Shown piece by piece: positions 3,710-53,931 of a stretch of DNA of 64,000 nucleotides. The translations under genes and the position numbers were made by a program. The stretch is from Zygnema circumcarinatum SAG 698-1b (taxonomy: Eukaryota; Plantae; Zygnematophyceae), in the NCBI GenBank assembly GCA_037447605.1, contig CM074817.1:2356001-2420000 (forward strand), written 5' to 3'. Position 1 is the stretch's first letter. Each line of letters starts with the position of its first letter. The notes beneath the pieces were generated by a model. It saw only the letters and a program-made list of their open reading frames with translations. It searched no databases and was not told the origin of the DNA.

Positions 3710-5996
3710 ATGGCGGCTGCAAAGCTCCTCCTCCTCCTCGCCGCCATGGCCTGCATATTTATCGCACACGTGTCAGCCGCAGCTCGCTGCCCTGATTACA
3801 AGGAACGGAGCGGCTGCCTAACGGGCTCATGTGCAAGGAAAGGCCTCCAAGGCTACTTCACGGCCAGTCAGCACTCCTGCAACGAGGGGAGAGGGAGAGA
3901 GAGAGGATCCTGCATCCCTAACAAAAAAATAGGGTTTCAAACCTCCATTCCGTGGTTTTCAACTTGAGTAAATTCTTAATTTGTTTTCCATTCTGGTGCA
4001 AATGGGGTGCAGGTCCCCCCTGCCCCGCACGTGTGCGTGGCGCGGCGGTGCCTGTTCGCGAAGTGGATGACGTGGCGGGGGCAGCGCCTGCAGGTGCTGC
4101 AGCGCGCCTTCGCCTCGCGGTGCTGCCTGGAATGCAAGAAGGCGGCGGAATGCAAGTACTGGCAGTGGTGGAAAAAGTGAATTCTCTCTCGCTCTATCCG
4201 TCTCACTCTCTCTCTTCTTATATCTACCTCTCTCTCTATCTCTCACCCTCATCCCCTCCTCTCTCTACCACTCTCCCTGCCTCCCTTTCCATTTCCTCCA
4301 TTTTCCTCTTTCAATTTCAATTTCAATTTCAATTTCACTCCTCTACCTATATCACCCTCCTCTAGTCATTTCCTTCTCTTCTCTCTTTCATTTCTCACTT
4401 CTCTCTCTCTTTTATTTCTCACTTCTCTCCCTCCTTCCTCTCACCCTTCTTCTACCCTGAACCTTATTCCCTCCCCTCCCTCCCTCCCACCTCCCTCCCT
4501 CCCTCCCTCCCTCCCTCCCTCCTCCCTCCCTCCCTCCCTCCCTCCCTCCCTCCCCTCCTCCCTCCCTCCCTCCCTCCCTCCCTCCCTCCCTCCCTCCCTC
4601 CTCCTCCCTCCTCCCTCCCTCCCTCCCTCCCTCCCTCCTCCCTCCCTCCCTCCCTCGCCCCCTCCCACCCTCCCTCCCTCCCTCCCTCCCTCCCTCCCTC
4701 CCTCCCTCCCTCCCACCCTCCCTCCCTCCCTTCCCCCAGGAACCACGCTTGCTTCCTCTACTTCGACCCGGACAAGGGCCCCCTCTGCGGAGGAACCGTC
4801 CTCTCCTATGTCGGCGCGCAGTGCCAGGACAAGGTCTATGTCCGCACGTGCCGAAAACGCAAGGGCGCCGTCACATGCACAGTTTCCGTAAAGGGCGACC
4901 CCCACCTCGTGGGAGCACATGGAACGCCGTTCGACTTCAGCGGAACCCCCGGGAAGTCCTTTTGTCTGTTGAGCGACGAGAGGTTCCATGTGAATATGAA
5001 ACTGACGGGGTACTACGACAACAGAACGGAGGGCGCCAGCGTTTTACGGAACGGGAAGGCGGTGCGGACATGGATACGGGAGGCGGGGGTGCTTTGGAAG
5101 GACGGGGGAGGGAGGGAGCACAGTCTGCATCTTGTTGCGAGGGAGGGGAGGGAGACGGCCCGAGGAGAAGGTTTCCTCGCCATGGCTATGGCGGACGGAG
5201 AGGAGCTTCCAAAGATGAAGGTGGGGATTCGAATCAAACTAAAAGAATAGGAATTGAATAGTTCTTGCTTTGGGGTTTAAGGTTCAGAAGTTTGGGCTTT
5301 GATAAAGGATAATTCTCATCATGTGTTGTTTGTGTTGTGCTGTGAAGCAGGAGGGCGAGGAATTGAAGCTTCCCGGGGCTCTCACTATCGCAATGGCGGG
5401 AGTGAGGAGGGAGGGCCCCTTTGAAGTGGAGGTGCTCTCTATTCAAATTGCAGACCTTCTCCAAATGGAAGTGAAGCTCCGTGTGGCGGAGCCTCTCCTT
5501 CAGACCTCTGAGGACGCGCAAGTTCACCTCAGTTTGGAAATAAGTTCGGTCAAGGTCGGCTCCTTAAACCACTCCAGGAGCAGAATTCAATCCCTTGTCT
5601 ACTTACTTACTCATTTGATTCGAAAAAGAAAAAACGAGTAACAAGTGGGTTCTTTTTTTTGTGGCGCAGGTGAGCCCCAAAGTGCATGGGATCTTGGGGC
5701 AGACATACCGCAGTGGGAGAGAAGAGATAGCGGCGGAGTTTGCTGAGATGGCGGCACAGCTGAAAAGACCAATTGCTGCGGATGGAGAGAGTGGAGAGGG
5801 GTTCTTGGACGGAGAGGCGGAGGACTATGTCTCCACGGGAGTGATGGAGCCCGACTGCACTTTTTCGGCTTATGGAGGGCGGGAGGAGGGGAGGAAGGTA
5901 TTGTTGGGGCAACTGGAGGTTGAGGATGAAGGAGGGGGGAGAGGAGAGCGGGGAAAGGGAGGGGCAGAAGAGGAGGGGAGGGATGGGAGGGAATAG
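3710..5996 (+). CDS. Secreted root-cap-domain protein with N-terminal Cys-rich/PAN-apple-like module (about 5 exons)
   Basis: Signal peptide MAAAKLLLLLAAMACIFIAHVSA. Exon ~4014 encodes RCCLECKKAAECKYWQW. Exon 4740-5220 encodes GDPHLVGAHGTPFDFSG…FCLLSD…VNMKL…TWI. Last exon has VHGILGQTY…DYV…DCTFS, typical of the root-cap (PF06830) family. First donor site uncertain. Confidence 0.8.
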
Positions 5997-6447
5997 AGAG
6001 AGGAGAGGGGAGAGGGGAGAGATAGGGGAGGGGTGGGAGAGGTCGAAAAGGGAAGGGTGGGGGGAGGAGGAGAGGGAAGGGAGAGGAGGGGAAGGGGGAG
6101 GAAGGCGAGGAGAGGATGGAAGGAAGGGGGTAGAGCCGACAGGAAGGATTGAGCGGACATCGAGGGGAGTGGAAGTGGGGAGACGAGGGAGGGGGCGGAA
6201 AAGAGGGAGAGAGAAGAGGAGATTGGAGGAGAGGTGGAGGGGGGAGGGAGGACGGGAGGAGGGGAGTGGAAAGGGAGACGTGGGAGCATACATGAAGGTG
6301 ACGAGTCCATGGTCTCTAAGACAAGCATGTAAGGGAGAGGGGATAGCCATGGGGGTAGCCATGGACCATGGCGTGGATGGATAAAGCGAGAGGTCCACAA
6401 AGGGAGAGATTCATGTAGAGCTTTGCGAGTCATAACTTCAACGTTAG

Positions 6448-6807
6448 TGTTGAGGATACAATTATTGTACATGCGAAGGTATAATGTGAGTCGCCACGCT
6501 CACACAATGTACGAGAGAGGGGTTGTGGGGCCTACAATAAGAGGGCTTAGGAGGGAGGGCTTAGGATTAAGGCGTGATGCCATGTGTAGCATAGTGCGAG
6601 TGAACAATGTTCCTTAGAACATTGTTCACATGTCATGTGAAAGTCAAAGTGAAAGTCACATGTCAGAGTGGTTTACATGAACCGCGTGTTGCGAGGAGTT
6701 GTTGGGGCTTGTGGGTGCTATGGAGGGTCCACGACGGTCCAATATTTTCATGTCCGAGTTTTTCTTTAGTCAAAGTTGCAAACCAAGCCCGGATTAGTCT
6801 TTCAACA
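6448..6807. mobile_element. Possible Copia-type solo LTR remnant
   Basis: TGTTGA…TCAACA termini around 360 bp containing a perfect 13-bp-stem hairpin (6600-6629). No target-site duplication found. Confidence 0.3.
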
Positions 6808-8073: not shown

Positions 8074-8354
8074 TCTCGCTCTCGCTCTATCTCTCCTCTT
8101 TTCTCTTGCGCGCTCCCTCGTGGGCTCCTCTCTCTCTCTCATTCTCTCTCTCTCTCTCTCGGTCTCTCTCATGGCCTCCTCTCCCTGTCCACCATTGCTT
8201 TATTCCGTCCGCACTTTTTCGTAGCGCACAAAACATAACTTTAAGCAGAGGATTTTTTATAAAGTCTGTTTTTTTGTTTTCTTTGGATAACTTTACGAGG
8301 CGCCATTAAACTTTATGGGAGTTCACTGCATAGAGTTACTACTGTGTCCTTCCG

Positions 8355-8425
8355 CCACGTGTCCTCGTTTCCGCGCCGATTGCCACGTGGCTGCGCGTTC
8401 TCCAACCTTTTCGAGCGCCACGTGG
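8355..8425. promoter_or_regulatory. G-box/ABRE cluster upstream of the quinone oxidoreductase gene
   Basis: Three CACGTG sites (ccacgtgtc, gccacgtggc, gccacgtgg) within 70 bp. Confidence 0.5.
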
Positions 8426-8945: not shown

Positions 8946-11826
8946 ATGAAGGCAGTAGAGATCAGTGCCCCGGGCGGCCCTGAGGTGCTGCGAGTAGTGG
9001 AGGTGGAGGCCCCAATTCCCAAAAAGGGGGAGGTATTGCTGACGGTAGCAGCAGCAGGTTTAAACCGCGCTGACATCATGCAGCGGCAGGGGAAATATCC
9101 TCCACCTCCAGGTTTGTTGTCCACCAAGGCAACGGCTGCTTGCTGACTTGCATTGGGGGGGTGGAAATTAGGGGCTTGGATTAGAGATGGGTCTGGAAAT
9201 GGAGGAAGAGAGAGAGGGGAAGAGAGGAGAGCGATAAGCAGGAGGGACGGAGAACGGAGTGAGAGAGTGGGGGTGGGGGAAGGAGAGATGTGGGAGGGAG
9301 AGGAGTGGAGGGAGCCGAGAGTGACAGGAGTGCGGAACAGTGTTGCTTGATTGGGAGGGGGGGGGGGGTAGATTAGAGAGGATGGACTGATGTTATTCCT
9401 GCCCTGAATTGTGAGCGATTACAGTATGGACTTTCGTTGATAGCTCTCCCTCTCACTCCCTCCCCCCTCTCACTCCTCTCTCTCTCCTGTGGTTGCAGGC
9501 GCCTCTCCCTATCCTGGGCTGGAGTGCTCCGGAACCATTGAGTTTTTGGGAGAGGGAGTAACGGGCTGGAAGGTGGGAGATCAGGTGAGAGCCTCTCTCC
9601 ATCCTTCTTTCATTTCCCATTGCTTAAGGCTTGCTTAAACGAGCTTGACTTTGTCGAATGCCCTATCTTCAATCCGTTGTTTCCCCTCCTTTTACCCTCT
9701 TTTTTCCTACGTGATTTACGGAAAAGCTTACTGGCACATAGAACAGGTGTGTGCCCTTCTGGACGGAGGAGGGTATGCAGAGAGAGTGGTAGTCCCTGCC
9801 TCCCAACTTCTCCCAATCCCTAAAGGAGTGAGCCTTATAGAGGCAGCCGCTCTCCCAGAAGTTGCCTGCACGGTGTGGTCGACCGTCTTCATGACTTCAA
9901 ATCTCAAGGAAGGAGAAAATTTTCTAGTGAGTTCAAAGTAGAACTTTGTTCTATAGTTTTTTTTGTCTACTTTTTGACATATATCTTAGAATTTGCTTTT
10001 GTGGATTGGTAATTTGCTGAGCAGAGATAGGACTCTCTCCCATTCTCCCTCTCTCCCATCCCTCCTCCATTCCTCTCTCCGTCCCACTCCGACCCCTCTT
10101 GCCCCGCCCTGCCCTCCCCACTCGTCCGTTATTCCCTCTCCCTCTCCCTCCTCTCGTCACGCTCTCTTTCTCCGTCCCTCCTCTCCCTCCTCTCCCTCCT
10201 CTCCCTCCTTCGAACCTCCCTTATAACCTTTGAGATCCCTCCTGGGAATTTTCCTCGCAGGTTCATGGAGGTTCAAGCGGCATTGGAACATTTGCAATTC
10301 AGCTCGCGAAAGCTAAAGGAGCGAGAGTGTTCTGCACCGCTGGTAAATCATTTTATACTTTGCTTTTTTATTTTTTTTCCCCTTCATACCTTTGAAATAG
10401 TATCCGTTTGCAAATGACGAACCCTGGGAATCTGAAAGCCTTTATTCATTCTTGCTTTCCTGCATGCAATGAAGGTGCGCTTTGGAGCGAAAAAATCACA
10501 CAGAAAAGCAACCATTTTTTTCTTGTTAATTAGTGGTTTCTTTTTCGTTTTTTTTCTTTTGCACGTTTGAGAACATAGGTACTCCGGAAAAGCTTCACAG
10601 ATGTAAAGAACTTGGAGCGGATGTCACCATCAACTACCGCGAAGAGGAATTTGTCGACAGAGTGAAGGAAGAGACGGCCGGTAAAGGTAAGGGACTGGCG
10701 GGTAGCCCTAAACCTGAAATCTGAACCCTAAAAATAACCTGAAGGGCCCTTCTTGCTGAGAACAGTCTCAGGCCTTGAATCACACTCCATAGCTTCCTGA
10801 TCGGCTCTCCTTGTTCCCCGTTATTCCACCCCTCTCTCTCTCACTTCTCTTGTTCTCGCTCTCTCCCTCCCTTGCTTTCCCTGCCTCTCTTTCCGCCCCT
10901 CCCGGTGTGCCCCTCTCCCCTCCTCCCGCTGTCCAGTCTCTCCCTCCCCCTCCCTCACCTACCTCTCCTACCCCTCCTCCCCCTCCCTCTCCCCCTCCAC
11001 CTCTCTCTCTCCCTTCCGACCTCCCTCTCCCTCGCCCCTNNNNNNNNNNGTCCCCCCCCGCCCTGCCCCCAGGCGCAGACGTGATCCTGGACAACATGGG
11101 CGGGCCGTACCTCGCCCGGAACATTCGCGCCCTCGCCACGGGCGGCCGGCTCTTCGTGATCGGCCTGCAGGGGGGCCGCGGGGGGGACCTCGACTGCGGG
11201 GCGCTGCTTATGAAGCGACTCTCCATCGCATGTCAGCGCTGCCTCTGCCCTCCCTCTTGCCCTCCCTCCCTCTCCCTCCTCCCTCTCTCTCTCTGTCTCT
11301 CTCTCTCGCTCGCCTCCCTTCTCACTCTCTTGCGCTGGCTCTTGCTGTTTTCCACCGCCTATTTCCTTCTTAGCCCGCATTCCTTCCTGTCACTCTCTGT
11401 ACCGCCCTCTTCCTCGTCCCTCCACCGGTCTCTGTTTCTCGCTTCCTGCCTCTCTCCCTTTCCCTCTCTCTCTCTCTCTCCCCCTCCCTCTCCCTCTCCC
11501 TCTCCCTCCCCGCCCTCCCTCCTCCCCTCCCTCCCTCCCTCGCTGAGCCTGCCCTCCCGCCTCTCTCTCTCTCTCTCTCCCCAGCGGCGGGCCTGCGCAG
11601 CCGCCCCCCCGAGCAGAAGGCCGGCATCGTGGCGGAGGTCCTCCGGCACGTGTGGCCGGAGGTCGCCGCGGGGCGGGTCCTGCCCGTGGTCCACTGCGCC
11701 CTCCCGCTGGCGGAGGCCGCCGCGGCGCACGCGCTCATGGAGGGCAGCACGCACGTCGGGAAGATCCTGCTCAAAGTGCCGCCGCCGAACCTCGACTTGG
11801 AGGTGTCGGTGCTTCCGCAGGCTTAG
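8946..11826 (+). CDS. NAD(P)H quinone oxidoreductase, PIG3/zeta-crystallin (MDR) family, 7 exons
   Basis: [15 protein letters not shown]…[33 protein letters not shown]…[10 protein letters not shown]…[16 protein letters not shown]…[17 protein letters not shown]…[13 protein letters not shown]…HVGKILL; phase-consistent GT-AG introns. Confidence 0.95.
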
Positions 11827-11985
11827 GGCTTTAGGGTTTTAGGGTTTAGGGTTTAGGGGTAGGGTTTAGGGTTTAGGATTTAGGGGTAAGGGTAGGGTTT
11901 AGGGTTTAGGATTTAGGGGTAGGGTTTAGGATATATGTTTAGGGTTTAGGGTTTAGGGTTCAGGGTTCAGGTTTAGGGTTTGGGG
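11823..11985 (+). repeat. Degenerate TTTAGGG telomere-like tract immediately after the stop codon
   Basis: About 20 variant TTTAGGG/GTAGGG/TTCAGGG units. Confidence 0.8.
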
Positions 11986-13040: not shown

Positions 13041-13264
13041 AATTGGGACTCGTGGCAGGTTTTCAGTGGAGGATGTTCTTTGGTTAAAAGGGGAGGCCGG
13101 CCCAAGAGGGTGCAGGGAGGGGCAACTCTGCAAGGATTGACCGCGATCGACCGCGGCGAGTAATAAAGAGAGGGAGAGGGGGAGAGAGAGAGAAGAGAGA
13201 GAGAGAGAGCGAGACAGGGGTCGCTCATTCTGCGGTTAGTACTTGTCGCAGTTAGCGAGTTAAG

Positions 13265-13629
13265 ATGGCGACAGAGGGAGCGGTGGACGTCTGCAGTGTG
13301 CTGCTGGCCATCCTGCTGCCGCCGCTTGGAGTGTTCCTGAAGAGGGAGTGCCAGATCGAGTTCTGGATCTGCATCCTGCTCACTATCCTTGGCTACATCC
13401 CGGGAATCATTTATGCCATCTACGTCATCATGAAGGTGAGAGAGAGGCCTGTCAGTCGCAGTGATGAGTTTGATCCCCTTAACTACTTCTGCAATTTGGT
13501 GATCACTTCCCTGAAGTTCGGGTTACGAATCAGTTTTTTGGCGTCATTCCGGGTTTAGTTCAGCATGCCTGTTCACCGAGGAAGTGCGGAATTCTTTTTG
13601 TAAATTCTCCTGCTGTGCAGAATCTATAA
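13265..13629 (+). CDS. RCI2: PMP3/RCI2 (UPF0057) small hydrophobic stress membrane protein, paralogue A
   Basis: join(13265-13435,13621-13629): MATEGAVDVCSVLLAILLPPLGVFLKRECQIEFWICILLTILGYIPGIIYAIYVIMKNL*. Confidence 0.95.
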
Positions 13630-15732: not shown

Positions 15733-16141
15733 CTATGGTGTCTGCAAAAATGACATGCCAATGAGGGCGATTCGACCATTAAGGGCAATGGGAAACGGAG
15801 GGAAACAAAATAATATCAAAGCCATCTCACCAGCTCGACACTACAAGCAAGAAATAGCGAATTAGATTGCAAGAGAAGTACACCATTTTCCATCTGAGAA
15901 GCAGCAGCAGCAGTTGCAATAGCAGCAGCCGCCGCAGCAGCAGTAATGTTGAAAAAATAGGGTTTCGAGCACTTACATTCACAATTACGTAAACTGCGTA
16001 AATTATTCCCGGTATATACCCCAGAAACGTCAGCAGCAGACATATCCAAAAGTCGAGCGCACATCCTCGCTTCAGAAATACCCCCAGCGGCGGCAGCAGT
16101 ATGGCGAGCAACACACTGCAGAAGTCACGCCCGTCACTCAT
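15733..16141 (-). CDS. RCI2: PMP3/RCI2 (UPF0057), paralogue B
   Basis: complement join(15977-16141,15733-15741): MSDGRDFCSVLLAILLPPLGVFLKRGCALDFWICLLLTFLGYIPGIIYAVYVIVNTP*. Confidence 0.95.
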
Positions 16142-16359
16142 GCTTGCTCCCCTCCTTAACCCTCGCACTCTTTCTTGCTCTCACGCCCCCTCACTCCCTC
16201 CCTCTCTCTCCTCCCGCTCTCTCCTCCCTCCTCCCTCCTCTCTCCTGCAAAACCTTGCACTACCCTCCTCGTGCCTTCAACTTCGAACCCCAAACCGTGC
16301 AAGCCCACGATCTTCAAAGCGCCGCCTCCCTCTTTAGCCGCGGAGGCGTGCAGGCCGCC

Positions 16360-18759: not shown

Positions 18760-20026
18760 GTTGGAGCTCTGGTTTGAACATGTGCTGAGAGAGCATTGTG
18801 GGGCCAAACGACTCCTTTGGTTTTTTTTTTTTTTTTTGTATGTTTGGCAATGGCAATGCTATCAGTCGACCTCCCAAAGTGACCTTCTGTTCCAATTAAA
18901 AAAAAAGTAAAAAAAATCATAAAGAAATGCACATTTAATATTCGTGCTTACTTTTTGAGAGAGAGAGAGAGAGAGACATCCAGGAAGCTTCCTGGAAGTC
19001 TGCACTTGATACGGCTGCCAAGTTGCCTAACCGTACGAAACAGTACGGCAGGCAGGGTCCGGTTCCCGCCCCTTCACACAATTTACAATCACAATTTGTC
19101 ACGTCATACACAAGGACACGAGGTTGATGGTGATTGGTCCAGGCTGTAAATGTAAGGTATTTGTCCTTTCCTCGAAGTTGCGATCGTACGACGTCTGTAC
19201 GGACCATTGAGGCAACTTGGGTGAGACACGTGGGCGCGTGCCATTCGCTGGGACCGAGCCCGGCTGCAGATCGAACGGTGATGTGATCTGCGAGAGAATC
19301 GACGGTGAAGATTCTCCGCGCCAGTGAAGACGGCCACCCGCGAACGATCTCGTGGCGAACGGATCTTTCGCTCCGAGCGCATTGTAAAATAAAAATGTGC
19401 CCGACGGAAAGTGGTGTGTATCGATTCCAAAAGGTGTGAAATGAACATTTTCTGTTTTTCAATCCTTTTTTGTCGATTTTAAAATCTGCCCGTGAAAGAA
19501 GGTCTGTGTGTAGACAAAAAAGGTGTGAATTTAGCATTACCCTTGCTGACGGGCCAGCGCCAATTCACCGACCGTACGACCGTACGTATGGTTCAATTGC
19601 AGCGGTGGTACGAACATTCTAAAAGAGTTCTGTAACTCAGGAACTTTCAGATTCGAACGTTCGAATTCTGAAATCTAAATCTCTAAAAGTCCCTTGTACG
19701 GACTTTTTGCCATCCCTGCACCACGGCAGGTATTGACCGTACTGTACTTCTGTCATTTTCTGCGGTTATAACGATGAAATTACAGTTCCCGTAACTCGCG
19801 CAGTTTAACTAGAACAGATTTTAACCCCATGTGAGTTTGAACATGTGTACGTCGTGAAACTGATTTCTGCAGTTTTCCCACGGAGGCGTGGCCCTTAGCC
19901 CTAAGTTGCAGCGCCTGTTGCTGGGGAGGACGAGGGAGGTCAACGAGAAGGGTCAAGCCCTGCTTCTTTTCCTCATTTCTTCTTCCCTCTCTCTCCTCCC
20001 TCTTTGTCTCAACCCCTGCATCAGAT

Positions 20027-22315
20027 ATGGCGGTAATGAGCGACTTCAATGCCGTCGTCTCTACCTTCAGATCAGAGTACAGCAAAACGCCAACCAAACT
20101 CAAGGTAACCTCTCTCTCTCTCCCTCTCTCTCTCTCGCTCGTTCTCTCTCATTCTGACCCTCTTTCAATCTGCCCCTCCTTTCCCGCTTCGCAATAACCT
20201 CAGCAATTGTGTCTTTTGTTCTGCAAATCTCTGAATCTCCGTAACTACAGCATACTGTATACCTTCGTTTGTCCATAATTTACAAGTATGATACTCGCAT
20301 TTATAGGCTAAAATCTGCATTGTAAATCGCCACCAGATCCTCTACCTCCCTTCCATTCGAGCAGGTCCTTCATTAGGGTTGAGTGAGGAAGGGCACAATG
20401 CTGCCCTGCTTGGCAGTTCTCTACTCATTCCGCATCTTGACGCATGGAAATCACTATTTCTATTCCTGTATTAGTTTCGTGTTTCGTGAAGTTTACGCTC
20501 ACACCCTATGTAGCGCTCTGGGGTTTTGACATTTTTGGAACTGACATTAACTTTGGAGATGCTTAGCTGAGTTTCCCTAATTCTTGTTTCTTTCATAAAC
20601 GGTGTAGGCAATTGACTTATTCCTCGTCTATGCCATCGTCACGGCAATCATCCAGGTAATTGGGAGGCCGTCGCCCTCTCCCTCTCCCTCTCCCTCTCCC
20701 TCGCCCTCTCACTTTCCCCCTCCATTTCCATCTCCCTCTCCCTCTCCCTCTCCCTCTCCCTCTCCCTCTCCCTCTCCCTCTCCCTCTCCCTCTCCCTCTC
20801 CCTCTCCCTCTTCTTTCACTTCTCATCCCTCTCGAGTCCTCTCGCACTCAATTTCTCATTCCCTTCAGAAACGTATTGTGCACCTTTCTCTCTCTATCTT
20901 CTCTGTACCTTCTCTATCCCTCCGTCCCCGCTTGTCAGTGTGAATCCTAAGGTCATCTCGTATTAGCCTCTCTCCTAACAGGGACGATGATAACCACGAT
21001 AGAGACATTTGTTAGGGTTAAGTCATCCGCTATTCTTTGCGCTTCATTACCTTCTCCTCAGTCACGCATCCATGGGCAGAAAATGAGCTGAATGTCAGCG
21101 TTGCATCAGTTTCTATTCATCCGTTGAAACAGATGTTAGTAGACATGCAAGTGGCTTTTAATCTGCTGCTAAAGCGAAGAATGGGCTTTTTGGGTAGGAA
21201 ATAGTTGAATTTTAGGAACCTGTTAATCCTTATTCATGGCAGACGGCTACAGTAGAAGTTATTTTCCTACTGCTATGCCATTCCCTATTGGAACTTCATT
21301 GTTTTCTTACCTTTTTCCTGTGCGGTTGCAGTTTGCCTACATGTCCTTGGTCGGCTCTTTCCCCTTCAACGCCTTCCTTGCAAGCCTCTTCGCTTGCATT
21401 GGAACAGCCGTGCTAGCAGGTGCGCATAACTTTATAATTCGTATTTCATTATATTGCTAAAACCGAAGAAATCATTAATAACTTTCCCTGCTTGAATCCG
21501 TATTTCATTTGAGTTTCCCATAGCCTCTGCTTCATTTTCTTCCAAGATTGACCTGTCTTTTCGTCCTTGGCGGTGAGTGCAGTGTGCCTAAGAATGCAAG
21601 CCAACCCGGAGAACAAAGAGTTTAAGGTAGAGAGCTTCCATCGCTGCCTCATCTTTGTCAGCATTTTCAAACATTTCGTTCATGTAAAGAAACCGAAAAC
21701 AGCTTTAGAAGGTCCTGTGCTCTTGAGACATCGGCCCATGCCAAGTCTTTAAATATAAGCAAGTTGAGTCAAGTCGAGTCAAGTCAAGTCAAATCAAGCC
21801 ATTCCAAGCCAAGCCAAGTCGAATCGAGTCAAGCCAAGCCAAACCAAACCAAAGCCAAGCCAAGTCGACTCGAGTCAAGCCAAACCCAAGCCAAGCCAAG
21901 CCAGGCCAAGCTAAGCCAAGTCAAGTCAAGTCGAGTCGAGTCGAGTCGAGTCGAGTCGAGTCGAGTCGAGTCAAGTCGAGTCGAGTCGAGTCGAGTCAAG
22001 TCAAGTCAAGCCAGGCCAAAACCAAACCAAGTCAAGTCGAGTCAATCCAAGCCAAAGCCAAGCCAAGTCGAATCGAGTCAAGCCAAGCCAAGCCAAACCA
22101 AGCCAAGTCAAGTCAAGTCGAGTTAAGATGAGTCGAGTCAAGTCGACTCAAGCCAAGTCAAATCAAGTCAAGTCAAGTCAAGCCAAGTTCTTCACCCTTA
22201 CCATTCCTTTTTACTTCTTTTTCTTTCGCAGGATTTGCCCCCCGAGCGAGCATTCGTAGACTATGTCCTTTGCAGCCTCGTGCTGTACCTCGTGGTCATC
22301 AACTTCGTCGGCTGA
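20027..22315 (+). CDS. DAD1: Oligosaccharyltransferase subunit DAD1/OST2, 5 exons
   Basis: …YSKTPTKLK/AIDLFLVYAIVTAIIQ/FAYMSLVGSFPFNAFLASLFACIGTAVLA/VCLRMQANPENKEFK/DLPPERAFVDYVLCSLVLYLVVINFVG*. Confidence 0.97.
21758..22187. repeat. Compound pentanucleotide array (AAGTC/GAGTC/AAGCC)n in DAD1 intron 4
   Basis: About 85 pentamer units read directly. Confidence 0.9.
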
Positions 22316-22703
22316 ACCCTCCCCTCTTCCTCGCAGCACTCATGTCTCGTAGTTCAGTTTCGCAAGAACGGGAAATTATGCATGGAGGCGCCGAAAATAA
22401 TAAAAAAAAAATGTTTTTTTGGCACAACAGTTTTGTATGCCCGCGCATGAGCGGAGCTTAATGTTCTTTTACTATTTGCCCTCATAAGAGGCTTTCTTTA
22501 CCCGTTGAAAAACTTGGTTTGTGGGTGAAAACTTGTTGGATGAATGTGAGGTCTGCATGGCCTCAGCCTGCACTTGGCAACCGCCCCAGAATCAGAATTT
22601 GAGGTCTCCGCAAAAAAAAAAAAAAAGGCAAACTTGACAGCATATAACACAACGCAATTTGAAGAAATTTATGGTTTTTAAATAGTATTACATAACAAAA
22701 AAT

Positions 22704-23404
22704 GGGGGCGACTATTTACAGTGTACGGATTCTGAATGTAGTGTACGATTTCGCCGGGCAGCAAAAAAAAGGTTTTTTTTGGCGAAAAATGCTGTTTCAC
22801 ACTTTTCAGAATAGATATAGACCCTTTATCGTCGGATGTACGGATGGTGATTTGAAATGTACGAAGCGCGCGCGTCTACAAGGTATAAGGGCGCAACACG
22901 TGGAGCGACATGATTGGTCGCGGCAACATATGACGTGGCAAGTATGTTTGGAACCGTGACGTGACGAAACGAGACGCAAAAAAAGTGGAGTCCGCGGATG
23001 GCAGTCGGAAATGGCGGGAATTAAAACTGACAGATTTTTCCTGAAACACGCTACGTTATGTGCCTTATCTTTTTTTGTCAGTTTGAATTCCCGCCATTTC
23101 CGACTGCCGTCCGCGGACTCCACTTTTTTCGCGTCTCGTTTCGTCACGTCACGGTCCCAAACATACTTGCCACGTCATATGTTGTCGCGACCAATCATGT
23201 CGCTCCACGTGTTGCGCCCTTATACCTTGTAGACGCGCGCGCTTCGTACATTTCAAATCACCAACCGTACATCCGACGAAAAAAGGTCTGTATCTATTCT
23301 GAAAAGTGTGAAACAGCATTTTTCGCCAAAAAAAACCTTTTTTTTGCTGCCCGGCGAAATCGTACACTACATTCAGAATCCGTACACTGTAAATAGTCGC
23401 CCCC
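22704..23404. mobile_element. Foldback/MITE element: ~329-bp near-perfect inverted arms, ~43-bp spacer, 8-bp TSD
   Basis: Arms 22704-23032 and 23076-23404; termini GGGGGCGAC…GTCGCCCCC; CAAAAAAT duplicated at 22696-22703 and 23405-23412. Confidence 0.92.
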
Positions 23405-23771
23405 CAAAAAATTTCTTATAGGCGTCACGTCACGAGTTACATGCGCCATCTTCAGCCCTCAGTTTTGTGGAGCCCGTTCACATGCGCAGGGCGGGTTGAC
23501 GCTACGCTCAACAGCACACATAGACGCCGCCACATAATTCGTCTCTGGCTTCCGGCCAGGGCGGAGAGCACCCTCCATCATGCATGATGATGCTCTTGTA
23601 ATCACATCATTCTCTATGTAGAATCATCAATTCTCTCTCTCTTTCTCTCTCTCTTTCTCGCACGCACACATATACATTCATATTTTTTTTCTTTTCTTTT
23701 TATATTCTTAACATTCATCACTAGTTCTTGTCCCTGCTGCTACTGCTGCTGCTGGTCGCCACGTGGCAGCC

Positions 23772-25163
23772 ATGAATACCTCCCTCTGCCTGCTTTGCTC
23801 GTCCTCGCCCTCTTCGTTTCTTTCTCCAGAAACCCTAATCCCAAACCCTAGAACCCTAAGCTCGAGAGAGGCTGACTCTAATCAAACCCTCTACCCTAAA
23901 GCTAACCACCTTTTCATCCCTAACCCTAATTCTGCCGCTTCTTCATCACCCGCTGTGTCCAAAAGCTTCCAAATTTCTTCCTCTCTCTCTGCAACTTCCC
24001 CCCTCAGCAGCAGGAGCCCCTCAATCTCCTCCCCCTACCGCACCTCTCTCCCTCCCTCCCTTCACGCTGCCCGTCTCTCCCACCGCTCCTCTTCTCCTTT
24101 CTGTGGAGGACTATTCCACCATTCAGAGACTGCCACGTGGCTCCAATGCCGTGCTGTAAGCGAAGCTTCTGAATCCTCCACAAAGTGGTGGGAGCGGTGG
24201 CTTCCATGGAGGGATGAGCTGTCACAAGACGAAGAAAGTGTATGTTAAGCTCCTCTCTCTCTCTCTCTCTCCCTTCCCCTCCCTCTCATACATTTCCCTC
24301 CCCTTTTTTTTCCATTTTTCATTTCCATTTCCATTTTCTTCTCTCTCCCTCTTCTCTCATCCGACTCTCTCCCCTATTCTCTCTACCGCCCCTCCATTAC
24401 TTGCTCCTCCCTCTCTCTTTCACTCGCCCTCTCGTCCTCGTCCTTCCACACGTATTTGCAGGACTTTCTTCAAAACCCACCTCGAATAGAGCTGGAGAAC
24501 ACCTACAAACAGTACGGAGATCGAATGGTGGTGGAAGATGTCTCCATACATTTGAACGCAGGTGAAGTGGTAAGGCCCCCAAAACTTGCTTGAAGGGCCC
24601 TAAATACCGTCAATTAAAATCCTTTGAATCGTTTTCAAAACCAAAGACAGCCTTCACATCCCTCTAACCCTAAAACGTTCCTAAATGACTCCGTTTTTCA
24701 GTTTTTTTCATTTTTTTTTCCAGGTGGGTCTTTTGGGTCCCAATGGGGCTGGAAAGAGTACGGCCTTTAGTCTGCTGGTGGGGAGGGAGCGTCCAACAAA
24801 GGGAACCGTAAAATTGGGGTCTCGAGATATTACAAAACTACCCCTCGAATTGCGGGCGAGGCTCGGTGTTGGGTATTTGCCACAGGTACATATTTTCCAA
24901 TTTCGCAGTAAACTTTTTCAGCCCTTAGAAGCTTAATGAAGCAAGCAAGCTGCAAGCATTCTTTTTGTTCATTTTTTCTTATCACCTTTCAGCTGTTCAT
25001 TCCACCTTTCTTCGCTAGCAAATCCTCCATACTCAAACTTGAACTCCACTCAACCCTAGTAAGAGGCCTTGATAGCTTCTTCTTTTCTCAATAGCGGTGC
25101 CCCTTTTGGGAATTTACACGTGAGGGAATAGAAGCGGGTCCAATCCACACCCTTAAACTTCCC

Positions 25164-25227
<64 letters not shown>

Positions 25228-25428
25228 TGATCTGCAGTAGTGTTCACACCATATCCGCGAAGTAAGTGGATCGGATTTTTCCGTTCACACTGTGCAGGAG
25301 GCGAGCATCTTTCGGGGCCTCACTGTGCGCGACAACATCTTATTGGTCCTGCAAGAGACCGGCGTCCCTCGGGCCAATCAGGAGGCACGGATTCAGGTAC
25401 TGAAACTGGGCTCTCTCTCTCCCACCTT

Positions 25429-25501
<73 letters not shown>

Positions 25502-27207
25502 CTCTCACTTCTGCAGACAGGCTTTTCCTCTGCCATTTTGTGTACGATTGCAAAGGTGTCTTTTTCCGTCTCCGATTCCGTTTCACTCTCTGACTACCCC
25601 CTCCCCTCCCCTCCTCCTTCCCCTCCTTTTCTTTTGTAATTGTATTTTATTGAAATAAACAAAACAGTAATCATTGATCACTGAATCGTTTATCAATATA
25701 GAAGTGTTATGAAATAAGTTGGTGGGAGGGGGGGGCCTGCAGGAGCTGCTTAGGGAGTTCGGATTGGAGCAGGTTTCCAACACAAGGGGGAGGTCTCTTT
25801 CCGGGGGAGAAAGGCGTAGAGCGGTACTTATTTCAACTTTTCTTCCCTTTCCTTTTGGGGTTTTAGGAGGCTCAGGGTTCAGAAACTGTGGGCTTTGCAG
25901 CTTAGAACGGAGTCGTACTTGAAAATCTTTCGTTTATTAGGAGTTTTCATTTTTTCTCCAGCAAGTTTTTCATCCTCAAAGAGGACAAGTTGTTCCTTTA
26001 CTTGAAGTGAGGATAAACAACGGTCATCTGTTAAACTGATTCCGTAAAACTGTGCATGGAACAGGAGCTGGCGAGAGCGCTCGCAGCAAACTGGAGGGGG
26101 GGTCCCCCTCGAATCCTTTTTGTTGATGAGCCATTTTCAGGAGTAAGCACATCATCAATTATTGATTTTTTCTTACAAAATTTCAGTCCACTATAAACCA
26201 CCTCCATAATGTCAGGGTCTCTTTATCAAAACCCTCTTTAAAGTCAGGATTTTTTCCCAGGTTTTTCGGGCCCAACTGCCCAAAATCTTCCTGATCTCGT
26301 GGGGAAGATCACCACGAGATCCCCTATTGTTAATGTAAACATAATAATCACTAGAATATGCATACTTCAAATGTAAACCTGCTGAAGTGGATCCGTTGAT
26401 TTTCTCCAGGTGGACCCAATCGGAGTGCAGGAGATTCAGGCCATGCTGCGAACCCTGTGTGAACGGGACAACATCGGAATCTTCATCACGGATCACAATG
26501 TGAACACCCACGACTTGTTGCCTGCTTTCTCTTTGCTCGCTCATACACAAGTTTTGCTATGTAACGTTGTCAGAAACCCTAAAACCTCCCCCCACACTCT
26601 TTCTCCCTCCCTCTCTCTCTCCCTCCCTCCCTTTTCTCTCTCTCCCTCCCCCCCCCACTCTCTCTCCCCTGCACACTCTCTCTCCCTCTCTCTCTTTCTC
26701 CCTCCCTCTATCTCTCTCTCCCTCCTTTTCTCTCCCTCCCCCACTCTCTCTCCCCCGCACTCTCTCTCTCTCCCTCTCTCTTTCTCCCTCCCTCTATCTC
26801 TCTCCCTCCCTTTCTCTCCCTCCCACCCCCACTCACTCTCACCCGCTCTCTCTCTCTCTCCCTCTCTCCCTCTCTCCCTCTCTCCCTCTCTCCCTCTCTC
26901 CCTCTCTCCCTCTCAGGTGATCGAAACTCTGCGCATATGCGACCGCGCGTACATGATGCACAGAGGGCGGGTCATGGCCCAGGGCACGCCCCAAGAGCTG
27001 TACGGAAACGCCTACGTGACCAGGCACTACCTCGGGGAGGGCTATGTGCGCCACATGGAGCCCAGACTCAGTTCTACGGAACCGTTAAACGGAGAGGCTT
27101 CCCCTGCAGGGAGCGAGCCAAGGACCGGGAATGGGGCCGTGGGGCCGCTGGAGGGCTCGCCTTTGAGCGAAGAATTGATGGCACAGCAATCAATAGATGG
27201 GAAATGA
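23772..27207 (+). CDS. lptB: LptB-like (YhbG) ABC ATP-binding protein with Ser-rich N-terminal transit peptide, 8 exons
   Basis: 156-aa Ser/Pro-rich first exon, then [34 protein letters not shown]…[20 protein letters not shown]…[18 protein letters not shown]…DEPFSGVDPI…[17 protein letters not shown]…GTPQE…YLGE. Confidence 0.88.
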
Positions 27208-27750
27208 CATTTTTTTTTTTTAAATATCCTATTTTTTTGTGTTTGGTTGTTTGTTTGTTATTTATTTATTTATTTTTTTAATTTTTTCCCAACCCAATTG
27301 ACTTGAACGGACCCGAACGGACCCCAAACGGTGGCACCCGGAAACAGGAAAGAGTGATCCACGGTGAAGTCACTCCGCTCGTGGTTTCTATGCGCAAGGC
27401 CGGTTCCATGTGCACAGGCCAACAGCAAACGGAGAACGGAGTTTGGCTCCATAGAAACTGCGTTCTTTGTATCAGCCAGCACGAGCAGCCCACGCAAACC
27501 AAACCAAATTCAATCCAAAACAGCGACAGGGCGGAGGAGGAATCCTTCTGGGATGGGCCATTCATGCAGAGCACACAACATTGTAACTGAATACATATGT
27601 TTTTTAGGGTTTGAACAGAGCAGAGTGCAGCGCTAGGCGTCGTCTCTTTACCTGAAGGCTTAAGGTATAACTTGGACGATCACTGAATTTCGTGAAGATG
27701 AGAACTGACGGAAGGTCCATCGGTCTCCTTCCCTCCTCTGCACTCACAGG

Positions 27751-40424: not shown

Positions 40425-42185
40425 TCAGGCGATATCGGCGGCGGCGATGGCTCGCAGGAGGGCGGGGAGCGGCGCGGCGGCGAAGAGCGAGGCGGGGTAG
40501 ACGGCGGAGCCCCAGCGCGGGTGCAGCGCCACCTGGCAGCACCCCGCGTTCGCGCACGCGAAGCCGAGGAGCGTGCGCAGACCGTCCACTTCGCTGTACG
40601 GCATGTTGCTGCGCCGCTGGATCATCTGTACGGCCGCCCGCCCGCCCCCGAACAATGAAAAAGAATAGCGGGTTTTAGGGTTTTGAAGGGAGGAGGGAGG
40701 GAGGGGGAGAACGAGAGTAACAGGGAGAGGGAGAGAGGGAGAGGGCGAGGGAGAAGAAGAGGGAGAGGGAGCGAGGGGGGGAGAGTGAGGGGGAGAATGG
40801 GAGAGAGATAGAGGAAGGGGACAGAGAGGAAGAACGAGGGAGAGAGAGGGGGAAAGAGTGGGAGAGGGAGGTAGAAAGAGAAAGAGAGACAATGGTGGTC
40901 TTACAGGAAGGCCGGAGCATGGATCAATGTAATCCGCAAAATAGCCGTCCTTAATCAAAGTGTCGCATACCGCCTTTGCCCACCCCACAAACTGCATCAC
41001 AAAAAGTGATGTAACCAATGTCAAACTGTGATGTAGATGCAACGCATCGACATAATGCAGTCGCTTCGGTGCCATCATGCAGGCCCCCTTCGGCCTCCAT
41101 ACGTGCAGTATGGCTCAACATACAGACCAGTCATGTCTTGATACTCCCATTTTACAAACATTTATTGACACATAACCCATTTGAAAAACCCCATTTAAAA
41201 AAGACCCGTTTGAAAAAAATCCATTTGAAAAAAAACCCATTTGAAAAAACTCCATTTGAAAAAAACGCATTTGAAGAAACCCCACTTAGAAGAACCCAAT
41301 TTGAATAAACCCCATTTGAAAAAACCCCATGTGAAGAAACCCTAATAGGAAGTGGGTCCCACAGATTCCAAGAGACGGTCCTTCTCGTCCTCCACGACCT
41401 CCCCCGTGCGCACTAAGTCCACGGCGGCGTTCTGGCACGTGGGAACGATCAAAAGGGAATTTGGATCCTGCCCGGGAAATATCGCGGCAAGGTCGCTGCG
41501 GTACTGGCGCGGGCAGCCTAAAAAAGATCCAAAAAAAAAAATACAATGATGATGGGTAGGTCTATTTACAAATGTACCCTTTGGATTGGGTTGCATAGGT
41601 TCGAATCAGCGTGCATTCGAATTTCGAGTTTTAAAGGTTGAAATTAGTTCCAAGGGAATGAGAACCATTGGAAAAATCAAGGTGTAATGGATTCATAATA
41701 TGAATTTAAGGAAGATAAAGGTGCCAACAAACGTGAAGGTTACACGACCCTAAAGTAACCCAAGATTTTTTTCGATCACTTGAAAAAAATAAAACCGACA
41801 AAATTTTCAACAGAAAAAGGAGACTGAATTCTAAAACGCCAGCCTTTCAACTCATAAACCCTAAATTTCTGAACCCCACCAAAGTCTTCGAGTAATGCCC
41901 CTACGCCCCTGAAAGCTGCCCCTCCAGCTATCAGAATCCAGCGAACCCCAAACCCCAAACCCCAAACCCTTACCCTAACTGTATAAATCCTAAACTCTCA
42001 CTCTGAACCCTAACCCGAAATCCTAACCTTCAACCGTAAACCCTAACTCCAAACCTCAACCCTAAAACCCTTCTCAGACCCTGCAACGTGGCTTTCTTAC
42101 AGTGCACGGAGTACTCCATTCCGCCACGTGTCGCCATCACGTCCGTCAAAGCGTACGGACCACGCCGGGGGGCGTCGGCCGACAT
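40425..42185 (-). CDS. MMADHC: MMADHC/CblD-like cobalamin-trafficking protein, 4 exons
   Basis: GMEYSVH-CPRQYRSDLAAIFPG…LLIVPTCQNAAVDLV…EDEKDRLLES/FVGWAKAVCDTL…YFADYIDPCSGLP/…YSEVDG…LLG…AGCCQVALHPRWGSAVYPASLFAAAP matches the PF10229 pattern. Confidence 0.88.
41175..41345. repeat. ~16-bp minisatellite (CCCATTTGAAAAAAA-like, about 11 copies) in an MMADHC intron
   Basis: Tandem units read directly. Confidence 0.8.
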
Positions 42186-43155: not shown

Positions 43156-47613
<4,458 letters not shown>

Positions 47614-48598: not shown

Positions 48599-51500
48599 TC
48601 ACCTTCCTTCTCTGCTCTCTCTCTCCTTGAAGGCATCAATGGCTGCCATCAGTCGGCCCTCCGTAAGTTGGTAAAGCCTTTTTTCTGCGATAGCGGTCGA
48701 TATTTCCACAAAGGGCCAATCCATGGCTTCCGCCGCTTCCTGCTCGTCGAGACCATCTCCGATGGCGCAGAATTTGACCGAAGAAAAATTTGAATCAGGC
48801 AAAAAACGCTCCTTGATCCACTTAAAGCATTGGAGCTTGCCCACATCACGGGAGCTGTAAACTGCAAATAAAACAAACAAAAAGGAGGGAGTGGGGGATA
48901 AGGGGGGGTGGGGGGGGGATGAAACTACCGAGGAGAAAACGTTTAAAAAACAAGGAGAAAACAAGAAAACCAAGATAGCATTCTAGGGATGGAAATGGGG
49001 AGGAGAGAGTAGTTCATTTCGGGAGATTGTTGAGCCCCTCTACCTTTCTCTTGATTAGTTTTGAGAATTTTAGGGTTTGCAGGCTCTCACTGTTCGCAGG
49101 ATGAATGAGGTGGTGGAGACGGAAAAGGAGGAGTTTGGCCAAAGTGGGGACGAGCTGCCCTGACGTCACGATCACGTTCACGTTCCTCCCTCCTCCACTC
49201 TCCCACACCTCTCTCTCTCCCTCTCCCTCTCCCTCTCCCTCTCCCTCTCCCTCTCCCTTTCCCTCACCCTCTTCCGCATCTCTCTCGCTCTTGTTAGAAT
49301 AGGCCACTCCCACTCCCTCCTCCTCCTTCTCCTTCCCTGTCACTATGCAGGGACCCTCAATTGGTTCGCCACTCTTTGAGCATTTTTCATACAAAAATTT
49401 GACCTTTTTCCCAACATCACTTTTGGTGATGTTTTCGACGTAGGACCGCTTCAAGCCGCCCCTCCCTGCATCACTTTTTCCTAACTTTATCGAGGAAGAT
49501 AATTTTCCGACCTGCCCGCCTGCCACCTGGCAAGCCAAAAGAAGCTTCCGGCCTGACAAAAGGAAAAATTTCCGAAAGGAGTCCATAAACAGTGCGCAAA
49601 ATGAAATAGAAAAAAAAGATGGGGAAAAAGAAAGGACGGAGAGGAGACAAAAACATTGAACAAATTAGAACGGAATTTCTCACATGTGAACCTTCTCGCC
49701 TAACGGAGACTGCTTCTTCTTCGGTTTATGTCTCTCCTTTCCGACAAAGGAACACAAAAACTTCCTTTCCTTTCCCCGCTTATTTTTCTTAATTCACTAT
49801 TACCTCGTTTTCCTCTTTACCTCTTTGAAGAAGTGTGGCTTGAGACAGAAGCAAACTCTCTCCCTCAGATTGCCTCCTCCTCTGCTCCCATTTCTTTTCT
49901 AATCACATCCATTAAGCGGCCTGCTGCTCAGCCATCATCTCGAATTATAACGAGAGGGAGAACATCATTACCACATTTTTCAAACCCTAACATCTCCCAA
50001 AACCTCTAAACACTGAAATCCGTAACAGCATGTAGAAATGTGCCAAGTTCTGAAGTTCTTCACCTTCGCTGAGCTGCTGGATGACAGATATTCCTTACTT
50101 GCGACAACTCCTTTGCTATGACACTCTCTCCTTCTCTCCCTCACTCTCTCCTTCTCTCCCTCTCTCTCTCTCTCTCCCTCTCTGCCTACCTCTCTCTCTC
50201 TCTCTCCCTCCCAGCGGTTCCTCTCCCATTGCAGTCTCTCCTTCCCCTCCTTCCCTCCCACCCGCTTCATTCTTTACAGCCTTCGGCATATGTGGCCCCC
50301 GCCAAATGGTTCTTTCTATGTTTAATTTTTCCCGCAGCATACTGAAAGTACGGGGCCTCTCCACCCTCCTTCACAGTAGGAGTAAACAATCCTCCAGTCT
50401 ACAAGTCCCCATCACTACAAAATGACCAAAACGGAGACTAAAAATCCCAAAACCCTCAAAATTCTCAAAACCTTGACCTCCTCCAAGGCCTACCCCCAAG
50501 ACCCCCTAAACCCTAAACCCTAAACCTTAAAGCCTAAACCCTAAACCCCCAACCCTAAAACCTGTACCTGCAGAGAGCCAACCGTCGGAGTACATATCGG
50601 TGCGCAGGTACAGCTGCCTCCACTCCTCCTCGCGCCTTCCGAGAAGCTTCTCCACCCCCTGCAGGAGAAGCAGGAGACCAGGATCAGAAAGAACCTTCCC
50701 CTCCCTCCTTTCTCCCTCCCTCCCCTCCCTCCCCCCTCCCTCCCTTCCTTCTCTCTCTCCCTCCCTCCTCTCCCATCCCACTCTCCCTCCCTCCCGCTGT
50801 CCCCTCCCCTCCCTCCTTCCCTCCCTCCCTCCCTCCCTCCCTCNNNNNNNNNNAAAAAAAAAAAAAAAAAAAATTAAGGGTAAAAAATGATGAGGAAGGA
50901 GAGAATTTCACTCTGTATTTTTTTTTTTTTTTTTGAAAATTACAGTTTTCAAAGATTTTGAAGGTTAGGTCAAACCTCTTCAAAGAACATGTGTTCATCG
51001 CAGATGTCCAAAATTAGCTTCTCCCACTTCTCTCCCACCTCCGCCCCCTCCCTCTCCTCCTTCGCCCCCTCCTCATGCTTAAGAGCAAATTTTCCGGTCA
51101 GAAGCGACTGAAAAATAATAAGAGTTTCGTCCAAATCCCACACAAAAACTTTTCTCTCCTCGCCCTTTTGTGAAATACTCCTTTTCTGTGGAAACTTTCT
51201 TGAACTTGCCTCAAAATCGAAGCTCTCCCTTTGTTTCTTATGCCTCACACTCTGTAACTCGTTTTTAACATTTTTTTCGCTGAAATTTTCTTCTTTCATT
51301 TCTGGTCCTCCGACCCCCCCCGTATGCGAACCCTCAACACTTATTTTCTCCATATTTTGCGGAGTACTGATTTGCTCCATATTTTGTGGAGTACTCGTTT
51401 CTCCCCCAACCTCTCCCGCCAAAACCGCGGTTTCCACCAATCGGGAGTCCACATATTGTCCCCTATTTTCCACATTTTCATCTACTGTACATCCATTTTC

Positions 51501-52930: not shown

Positions 52931-53370
52931 CCTAACCCTAACCCTAACCCTAACCCTAACCCTAACCCTAACCCTAACCCTAACCCTAACCCTAACCCTA
53001 ACCCTAACCCTAACTCCTAACTCCTAACTCCTAACCCTAACTCCTAACTCCTAACCTCTAACCCTAACTCCTAACCTCCTAACCCTAACTCCTAACCTCC
53101 TAACCCTAACTCCTAACCCTAACCTCTAACCCTCCTAACCCTAACCCTAACCCTAACCCTAACCCTAACCCTAACCCTAACCCTAACTCCTAACTCCTAA
53201 TCCCTAACTCCTATCCCTAACCCTAACCTCTAACCCTAACCCTAACCCTAACCTCTAACTCCTAACCCTAACCCTAACCCTAACCCTAACCCTAACCCTA
53301 ACCCTAACCCTAACCCTAACCCTAACCCTAACCCTAACCCTAACCCTAACCCTAGCCCTAACCCTAACCC
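52931..53370. repeat. Interstitial telomere-like array (CCCTAA)n with CTCCTAA/CCTCTAA variants
   Basis: About 70 hexamer units read directly. Confidence 0.95.
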
Positions 53371-53931
53371 TTTGGAAGATATGAATTATTTATTTATTTG
53401 CACACAAAACAGCCCTAACTCACTCCTCCAACTGCTCCTGCCCGAGGGCAAGCAGAGCCTCTCCCTCACCTCGCCAGTGCGCCCTCCGACAGGAACGGGT
53501 GCAGAATCTTCAGCTTTCTAAAATGCTCTTGTGCACAGGACGACCTCCGAGAGCACAGAATTTTTTTTTTTTTTGGTTTTTAAATCGAAAATGTCTGGAG
53601 TTAGATCATAGGCGGATCAAGTTCCGCGTTCGTTGCCTTTAGACGATATCAATATGATACGATACGATACGATACAGTATGATACGACAAGATACGGTAC
53701 GCCGTAATCGTAAAGAAGCGCCCGTAAAACCGTACCATTCCATTCGCTGCCGTACAGCAGAAACCGTCACGATGACGCAACACGCGTACGAAAGCACCGT
53801 ATTTCGGCTCTTACTGTTCAGGTAGAAATTCCTAACCACAAGCCTCAACAACAACTTGGCGGCCATTTGGTAAAAAAATTATCTAAGTATTCCTTCGAGA
53901 CTCTCTAGTCTTTCGAGGGAATGGAAGTGGC

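Follow-up and report, generated by a model that had tools for sequence, protein, structure and literature searches.

A 64-kb stretch of the genome of Zygnema circumcarinatum SAG 698-1b (assembly GCA_037447605.1, contig CM074817.1, positions 2,356,001 to 2,420,000 of the forward strand; called the window below, in which all coordinates are given) carries a nuclear gene (23772-27207, plus strand) whose product, as judged by its sequence, is an LptB-type ATP-binding cassette (ABC) ATPase, the motor of the bacterial lipopolysaccharide (LPS) extractor. We consider it probable that this nuclear, cyanobacterial-derived, and vertically inherited LptB is a plastid Lpt-type motor. A first-pass annotation of the window, made from the letters alone, had as its central idea that a eukaryote has retained an LPS-export motor. 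This idea is right for a family of streptophyte proteins as a whole and is not specific to the window locus, and the LPS-extraction role itself is a prediction. The window copy is an ordinary member of the family: it adds one more gene to a set whose other members were already in public databases.

The protein was searched exon by exon against the NCBIfam profiles, and whole-protein comparisons were made by script. The profile of interest is TIGR04406, the NCBIfam LptB equivalog (LPS export ABC transporter ATP-binding protein), which has a length of 239 positions and a cut-off of 240 bits. Exons 2 to 8 fall on it colinearly and without overlap, covering positions 3 to 237, with piecewise scores that sum to about 197 bits, and LptB is the top family for six of the seven exon pieces. 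As a spliced protein, window residues 165 to 407 align end to end with Escherichia coli LptB at 52% identity over 240 amino acids (E = 3e-76). Identity to other E. coli ABC ATPases is 32% for LivG, 32% for LivF, and 28% for MlaF. We also built a local hidden Markov model from 79 bacterial LptB proteins (78 fetched loci and the E. coli protein), which scored the window protein at 313 bits and its orthologues at 285 to 316 bits, compared with 168, 167, and 135 bits for LivG, LivF, and MlaF. Whole algal orthologues score 272 to 302 bits on TIGR04406, with the next family at 165 bits or less, and the 15 best PDB matches of the orthologue from Netrium are all LptB. In three trees rooted on LivF and LivG, one of them also including MlaF, the window protein falls inside LptB. 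The homology to LptB that had been proposed is borne out by the identity, the colinear profile match, and the trees. Grouping with TGD3/MlaF or LivG, named by the first-pass annotation as the outcome that would speak against it, did not occur, TGD3 being represented in this comparison by MlaF and not by a sequence of its own.

The alignment shows that the window protein keeps the equivalents of E. coli K42, Q85, S139 to E142, D162, E163, and H195, and it is likely to be catalytically competent. E. coli LptB contacts the coupling helices of LptF/G through F90, R91, L93, and R150, as shown experimentally (PMC5082905). All four residues of this groove cluster are identical in the window protein and in all complete algal orthologues except that of Spirogloea, which has the conservative change R91K.

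The gene model was assembled by script from eight proposed exons after positions 23300 to 27700 had been read. The eight spliceosomal exons of the first-pass annotation were confirmed: all seven introns are of the GT...AG type, all eight exon lengths are divisible by three (phase 0), and the joined frame encodes a product of 458 amino acids ending at a TGA stop codon. Exon 1 (23772-24239) encodes 156 amino acids, with the start codon, a Ser/Pro-rich leader at residues 1 to 131, and an aromatic WWxxW segment ahead of the ATPase domain. A 156-residue leader ending in WLQCRAVS had been described; the exon does have this length, but WLQCRAVS ends at residue 131. Exon 2 (24462-24569, 36 amino acids, TIGR04406 positions 3 to 29) encodes the first beta strands of the nucleotide-binding domain and an aromatic equivalent of E. 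coli Y13. The join between exons 1 and 2 is backed by the alignment with the transcript-derived Netrium protein, which runs from residue 136 onward through the domain. Exon 3 (24724-24885, 54 amino acids, TIGR04406 positions 30 to 83) holds Walker A at 24736-24762 and ends in the Q-loop Gln at 24883-24885. It scores 64.6 bits (E = 7.8e-18) against TIGR04406 and also matches Pfam ABC_tran. The groove residues equivalent to F90, R91, and L93 lie in EASIFRGL (25298-25321) at the start of exon 4 (25298-25396, 33 amino acids, TIGR04406 positions 84 to 115), and exon 5 (25743-25823, 27 amino acids, TIGR04406 positions 118 to 144) contains the ABC signature LSGGERRR at 25797-25820. Exon 6 (26065-26142, 26 amino acids) encodes the R150 equivalent, a clade-specific insert around WRGGP (26092-26106), and the Walker B segment ILFVDEPF with the catalytic Glu (26113-26136); its best profile positions, 147 to 167, are on a model sister to TIGR04406. 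The D-loop VDP and the switch His in ITDHN (26485-26499) are found in exon 7 (26410-26499, 30 amino acids, TIGR04406 positions 166 to 194). Exon 8 (26917-27207, 96 amino acids plus the stop, TIGR04406 positions 197 to 237) encodes the LptB-type C-terminal segment as far as YLGEGY (27028-27045).

Several motifs exist only after splicing because exon junctions cut through them, namely GYLPQ/EASIF, DEPFSG/VDPI, and ITDHN/VIETL. These three and YLGE had been listed in the first-pass annotation, and all were found where it had placed them. It had also called YLGE terminal, which it is not: the motif is followed by a low-complexity tail of 53 residues that is absent from the orthologues. Intron 7 (26500-26916, 417 nucleotides) is a CT-rich microsatellite without an in-frame stop, for which reason the mechanical list of open reading frames (ORFs) joins 26410-27207 into one ORF. 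An intron at the same codon is also present in Klebsormidium and Diphasiastrum. A word search with the exon 8 part of this ORF gave 12 candidates and one weak bacterial match; the C-terminal 43 residues have too few exact words in common with their relatives.

For relatives, exon 3 was scanned against one genome per bacterial species and then searched against a large set of representative proteins, and the resulting matches seeded two word searches. The bacterial scan returned LptB proteins of many phyla that are 47 to 57% identical over the whole domain, with Pyrinomonadaceae best; it found no close donor, and no bacterial sequence exceeded 57% identity. The top matches with an N-terminal extension were nuclear proteins of streptophytes, from Spirogloea muscicola, Closterium species, and the lycophyte Diphasiastrum complanatum. 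The seeded searches added Netrium digitus (a complete transcript, EP00270_P015759), Mesotaenium endlicherianum (ME000022S03619), further Closterium strains, and Klebsormidium nitens, whose protein GAQ88722.1 is deposited as "lipopolysaccharide export system ATP-binding protein." The highest identity of the window protein to any streptophyte relative is 68% (Mesotaenium), followed by 64% for Klebsormidium, 62 to 65% for Spirogloea, 57 to 63% for Closterium, and 54% for Diphasiastrum (KAJ7544338-41); the value for Netrium, 61%, comes from a longer alignment of 289 amino acids. The window protein itself appeared in none of the protein searches, and given that 68% is the ceiling, its source is a species not represented among these relatives. 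The window gene is nevertheless not a one-off: public databases already contain LptB-like orthologues from a lycophyte and from five or more genera of streptophyte algae. We found no publication on a streptophyte nuclear LptB family in the literature searched; the family is functionally uncharacterized, with one member correctly named.

The members of the family vary in their leaders and tails, and their intron number ranges from 1 to 7. Spirogloea has three copies (P0017, P0156, and P0157), in all of which the gene model fuses a D123 domain (PF07065) to the LptB domain; this is probably an annotation merge of two adjoining genes and not a true fusion. Some Closterium gene models (P0002 and P0167) read through the intron after GGERRRA. 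At the locus of Closterium sp. NIES-68 (L088), an additional partial exon-4-like segment (5020-5136) and a C-terminal segment with an in-frame stop (6343-6522) lie beside the gene as local partial duplications. Two eukaryotic contigs, one from a Logan assembly (L091) and one from a JGI metagenome (L092), carry intact single-intron copies that group with Diphasiastrum (96/97), and the three together probably form a land-plant subclade. In the Diphasiastrum copy, Asn replaces the Walker A Lys, GGERHR stands for GGERRR, and ITDHKV stands for ITDHNV. At this locus (L089, CM055100.1, 5751-12996) exon 4 is intact (8289-8375) but is skipped in the deposited models, which also lack exon 2 (5751-5837). 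The Diphasiastrum copy may be decaying or changed in function.

Phylogenetic analysis connects the family to cyanobacteria. A first tree, which contained neither streptophyte nor cyanobacterial sequences, placed the window protein within LptB on a long unresolved branch. In a more careful tree of 54 sequences, eight of them from the cyanobacterial group, the streptophyte proteins form a clade (100/100) that is sister to a cyanobacterial clade with a support of 99/99; a later tree of the same topology gave 100/98. Within the streptophyte clade, Netrium is the sister of the window protein (96/84) and Mesotaenium branches next, and the terminal branch leading to the window protein has an ordinary length for the clade. 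The identity of the cyanobacterial group rests on several points. One of the eight is named Oscillatoria sp. (P0281), and two of the group's lptB genes adjoin genes for FeThRed_B (ferredoxin-thioredoxin reductase) and the CpeT phycobilin lyase, and in these two an LptA-like gene immediately precedes lptB. The other members were assigned by 73 to 76% identity to the identified ones and by the insertion that they have in common. A tblastn search of plasmids for named cyanobacterial LptB proteins returned none. Two proteins of the group (P0182 and P0395, 500 amino acids) combine LptC (PF06835), LptA/OstA (PF03968), and LptB domains in one chain, which reflects either a natural three-component Lpt fusion or genes merged by the gene caller in metagenome contigs of cyanobacteria.

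The insertion lies before Walker B. The spacing from ARAL to DEP is 9 residues in 303 bacterial LptB proteins, 12 in all 15 sequences of the cyanobacterial group, and 14 to 17 in all streptophyte sequences, with 14 in the window protein. Among the 335 sequences scored, an insertion at this site is limited to the cyanobacterial (+3) and streptophyte (+5 to +8) proteins, which makes it evidence for the cyanobacterial sister group that is independent of the tree. From the tree and the insertion we conclude that the window gene descends from a cyanobacterial lptB, an ancestry that a plastid relic would require.

The gene structure speaks to how long the gene has been in the nucleus. With exons mapped onto genomic loci, the introns inside the ATPase domain that are common with the window gene number six of six in Diphasiastrum, five of six in Klebsormidium, and three in Closterium. 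The genes flanking it in the window are eukaryotic and encode an mTERF protein, an XS-domain protein, RPN7, two Pmp3 proteins, MMADHC, a quinone oxidoreductase, and a RING protein. DAD1-like exons (20036-22324, plus strand) and the MMADHC gene (40434-42162, minus strand) lie on either side of the LptB gene, and in K. nitens (L087, DF237403.1) the LptB gene likewise adjoins MMADHC and DAD1. The order of the three is rearranged between the two genomes, and in the window an LRR/EGF-like gene is inserted (28 to 36 kb, minus strand, judged by eye from ORF translations). Microsynteny between streptophyte algae as distant as the source of the window and Klebsormidium is unusual. The common introns and common neighbors rule out contamination and recent transfer, and the nuclear, noncontaminant status claimed in the first-pass annotation stands. 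The best explanation of the sequences compared is that the gene has been inherited vertically since before the split of Klebsormidiophyceae from the lineage leading to land plants.

The window protein has an N-terminal extension without counterpart in bacterial LptB. Its leader (residues 1 to 131) contains 27% Ser and 6% Thr (33% together), 11% Pro, and 3.9% Asp plus Glu, with a net charge of +4. The extensions of the window, Netrium, and Closterium proteins are all rich in Ser, Thr, Ala, and Arg and poor in acidic residues. This suggests a plastid targeting sequence, although composition alone cannot separate plastid from mitochondrial targeting with certainty; plastid import is inferred from the leader composition together with the cyanobacterial ancestry. 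Between the leader and the ATPase domain, residues 138 to 146 (nucleotides ~24183-24209) form the aromatic segment WWERWLPW, with WWRFW in Netrium, FFRLF in Klebsormidium, and no equivalent in bacteria, and in the mature protein this segment may form an amphipathic helix that contacts the membrane. Within exon 1, at 23830-23930, degenerate telomere-like CCCTAA/AACCCTA motifs are read as PNP-rich stretches, and simple-repeat DNA seems to have supplied the material for the leader.

As a plastid Lpt-type motor, the protein would work as follows. The Ser/Pro-rich leader would bring LptB into the chloroplast, and two copies would be attached to the inner envelope on its stromal side. The Q-loop groove of each copy, with F, R, L, and R at the sites of E. 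coli residues 90, 91, 93, and 150, would bind the coupling helices of a membrane pair of the LptF/G type. Powered by ATP binding and hydrolysis, the complex would pull a bulky glycolipid out of the inner envelope. The lipid might then be passed across the intermembrane space toward an LptD-derived outer-envelope barrel of the TGD4/LPTD1 family. Location, partners, transport direction, and cargo belong to this model only. The chloroplast outer envelope of land plants retains the LptD-derived TGD4 and LPTD1. A wider proposal can be put forward tentatively, as one possibility: an Lpt bridge of the cyanobacterial type would still operate in the chloroplasts of streptophyte algae and perhaps of some land plants without seeds. 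It would lead from an LptB2FG-like extractor in the inner envelope through an OstA-type bridge to TGD4 or LPTD1, and it would carry a bulky glycolipid, lipid A-like or other, to the outer envelope. If so, TGD4 and LPTD1 of land plants would be what remained after loss of the motor, comparable to the gradual loss of plastid peptidoglycan.

Several observations weigh against a plastid motor of cyanobacterial descent. A tblastn search of the 64-kb window with E. coli LptF, LptG, LptC, and LptA and with the cyanobacterial LptA-like protein gave nothing at E < 1, the rest of the genome not having been searched. According to a passage of PMC3355754 that cites Li et al. 2011, the lipid A enzymes of Arabidopsis are mitochondrial, and as far as that passage goes, a lipid A-like cargo is not obviously made in the plastid. 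The lost Walker A Lys of Diphasiastrum shows that function in the family can decay. Among the matches listed, streptophytes are the only eukaryotes that carry the LptB clade, so a later cyanobacterial transfer stays compatible with the data; the route may have been primary endosymbiotic transfer with losses elsewhere or such a later transfer, and the matches listed do not decide between the two. The melainabacterial LptB, moreover, falls outside the cyanobacterial clade, and the LptB tree is for this reason not strictly a species tree.

The alternative that survives best is a true LptB orthologue that has been re-used, with another membrane partner or in another compartment such as the mitochondrion, and without a cyanobacterial-type Lpt bridge; its cargo might be a glycerolipid or a precursor of lipid A, or its role might be to regulate a different complex. 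We regard this as rather unlikely but worth serious weight. It would fit the lack of an Lpt partner in the window (the part of the genome searched) and the mitochondrial report for the Arabidopsis Lpx enzymes, within the limits of that passage. It would also fit the lipid importer known from land-plant plastids, which consists of the Mla-type TGD1-3 with the LptD-like TGD4, and the clade-specific insert and conserved WWxxW segment, both absent from bacteria, could reflect a new interaction. However, the four LptF/G-contact residues are unchanged in the complete algal orthologues apart from the R91K of Spirogloea, the orthologues still exceed the strict LptB equivalog threshold, and the ancestry is cyanobacterial, not alphaproteobacterial.

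Much less probable is a decaying relic, transcribed or merely open and no longer functional. Such a fate would be in keeping with a family that looks patchy, with no seed plants among the matches listed, with a lycophyte copy that lacks the Walker A Lys and whose gene models skip exon 4, and with a Closterium locus that has partial duplicated fragments containing stops. The window gene itself has an open frame across eight exons, canonical splice sites, and every catalytic residue; its domain is 57 to 68% identical to those of long-diverged algal orthologues, its terminal branch is ordinary, and a complete transcript is known in Netrium.

Membership of another ABC family, of the TGD3/MlaF or LivG/LivF type, has almost nothing in its favor, since the weak exon 8 match to Pfam PF12399 (a branched-chain C-terminal motif; E = 0.032, below threshold) concerns a motif also annotated on many true LptB proteins, identity is 28 to 32% to LivG, LivF, and MlaF against 52% to LptB, and very long branches separate the LivF/LivG outgroup from the LptB group, in which the window protein lies. 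Bacterial contamination or a very recent transfer is just as improbable, for although the domain is 47 to 57% identical to many bacterial LptB proteins, identity to bacteria does not go beyond this, seven GT-AG introns interrupt the gene, several of them splitting conserved motifs, the flanks (mTERF, XS-domain gene, RPN7, Pmp3, and MMADHC) are eukaryotic, and intron positions and neighbors are common with other streptophytes.

Set beside known systems, the window protein resembles E. coli LptB, the ATPase of the LptB2FGC extractor, over the 240-amino-acid domain in Walker A and B, the Q-loop, LSGGERRR, the switch His, the groove cluster, and the YLGE-type C terminus. It differs in being encoded in the nucleus with seven introns and outside an lptC-lptA-lptB operon, and in having a 156-amino-acid N-terminal exon, a 5-amino-acid insert before Walker B, and the 53-amino-acid tail. 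The cyanobacterial LptB proteins (Oscillatoria sp. P0281, P0355, P0358, and others), which form the sister group, are about 55% identical, with the insertion at the same site and with the motifs LVLQ/E-ET.VP and EFRLE. They are encoded by bacterial genes of 242 amino acids with an LptA-like gene directly upstream, and their insert has 3 residues instead of 5. With the other streptophyte nuclear proteins, the window protein has in common the clade, an NC.GGPP-type insert, and intron positions, and with Klebsormidium also gene neighbors. TGD3 (ABCI13, of the TGD1-2-3 importer) and MlaF are likewise stand-alone ABC ATPases of bacterial descent in envelope lipid transport, from which the window protein is set apart by its lower identity to E. 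coli MlaF (28%, against 52% to LptB), TGD3 being distinguished through MlaF. In TGD4 and LPTD1, plastids have kept a further remnant of the bacterial Lpt machine, which would be a plausible outer-membrane end of the pathway; the two are beta-barrels, unrelated in protein family to the LptB ATPase.

It has long been asked, without a clear answer, whether chloroplasts have any LPS-like lipid and any of the machinery to place it in an outer membrane. Evidence to date consists of histochemical hints of lipid A in chloroplasts, the Lpx genes of Arabidopsis, and the LptD-like TGD4 and LPTD1. The intact and conserved LptB that streptophyte algae have inherited from cyanobacteria offers a concrete gene handle on this question in lineages near the origin of land plants, some of which are transformable, and it adds a marker with which to follow how the cyanobacterial envelope was lost step by step in plant evolution. 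This value rests on the streptophyte LptB family as a whole and not on the window locus.

Other features of the window were recorded along with the gene. An inverted repeat (22704-23032/23076-23404) with 329-nucleotide arms, 97% complementary and separated by a 43-nucleotide spacer, ends 368 nucleotides ahead of the LptB start codon and resembles a foldback element or a miniature inverted-repeat transposable element (MITE) located in the promoter region; sequence near 18938-19564 is possibly related to it, as judged by eye from ORF translations only. Two Pmp3/RCI2-type proteolipid genes (13256-13555, plus strand, and 15830-16180, minus strand) are convergent and 2.5 kb apart. The MMADHC homologue (40428-41114, minus strand) suggests a vitamin B12-using alga; to our knowledge, this cobalamin-trafficking protein (CblD) is not expected in seed plants. 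An Rfam scan of the window found no RNA family. Interstitial telomere-like arrays occur at 11823-11985, 50504-50563, 52931-53371, and 60588-60927, with (TTTAGGG)n and (CCTAAC)n/(GGTTAG)n tracts of 340 to 440 nucleotides, and a two-unit telomere-like pattern has 21 matches in the window where about 0.03 would be expected. CT/GA microsatellites are numerous across the window. Together with promoter-like motifs, the telomere-like and CT repeats had first raised the possibility of a coccidian or chromerid origin, which was rejected in view of the XS-domain, mTERF, and MMADHC genes of the window and of the streptophyte relatives and synteny of the LptB gene; the window is likewise not human, its genes being streptophyte-like. 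At 45454-46706, a 1.25-kb, nearly pure (AG)n tract of 628 copies with 97% matches lies within the RPN7 gene, whose exon pieces span 43.9 to 47.1 kb, and is presumably intronic.

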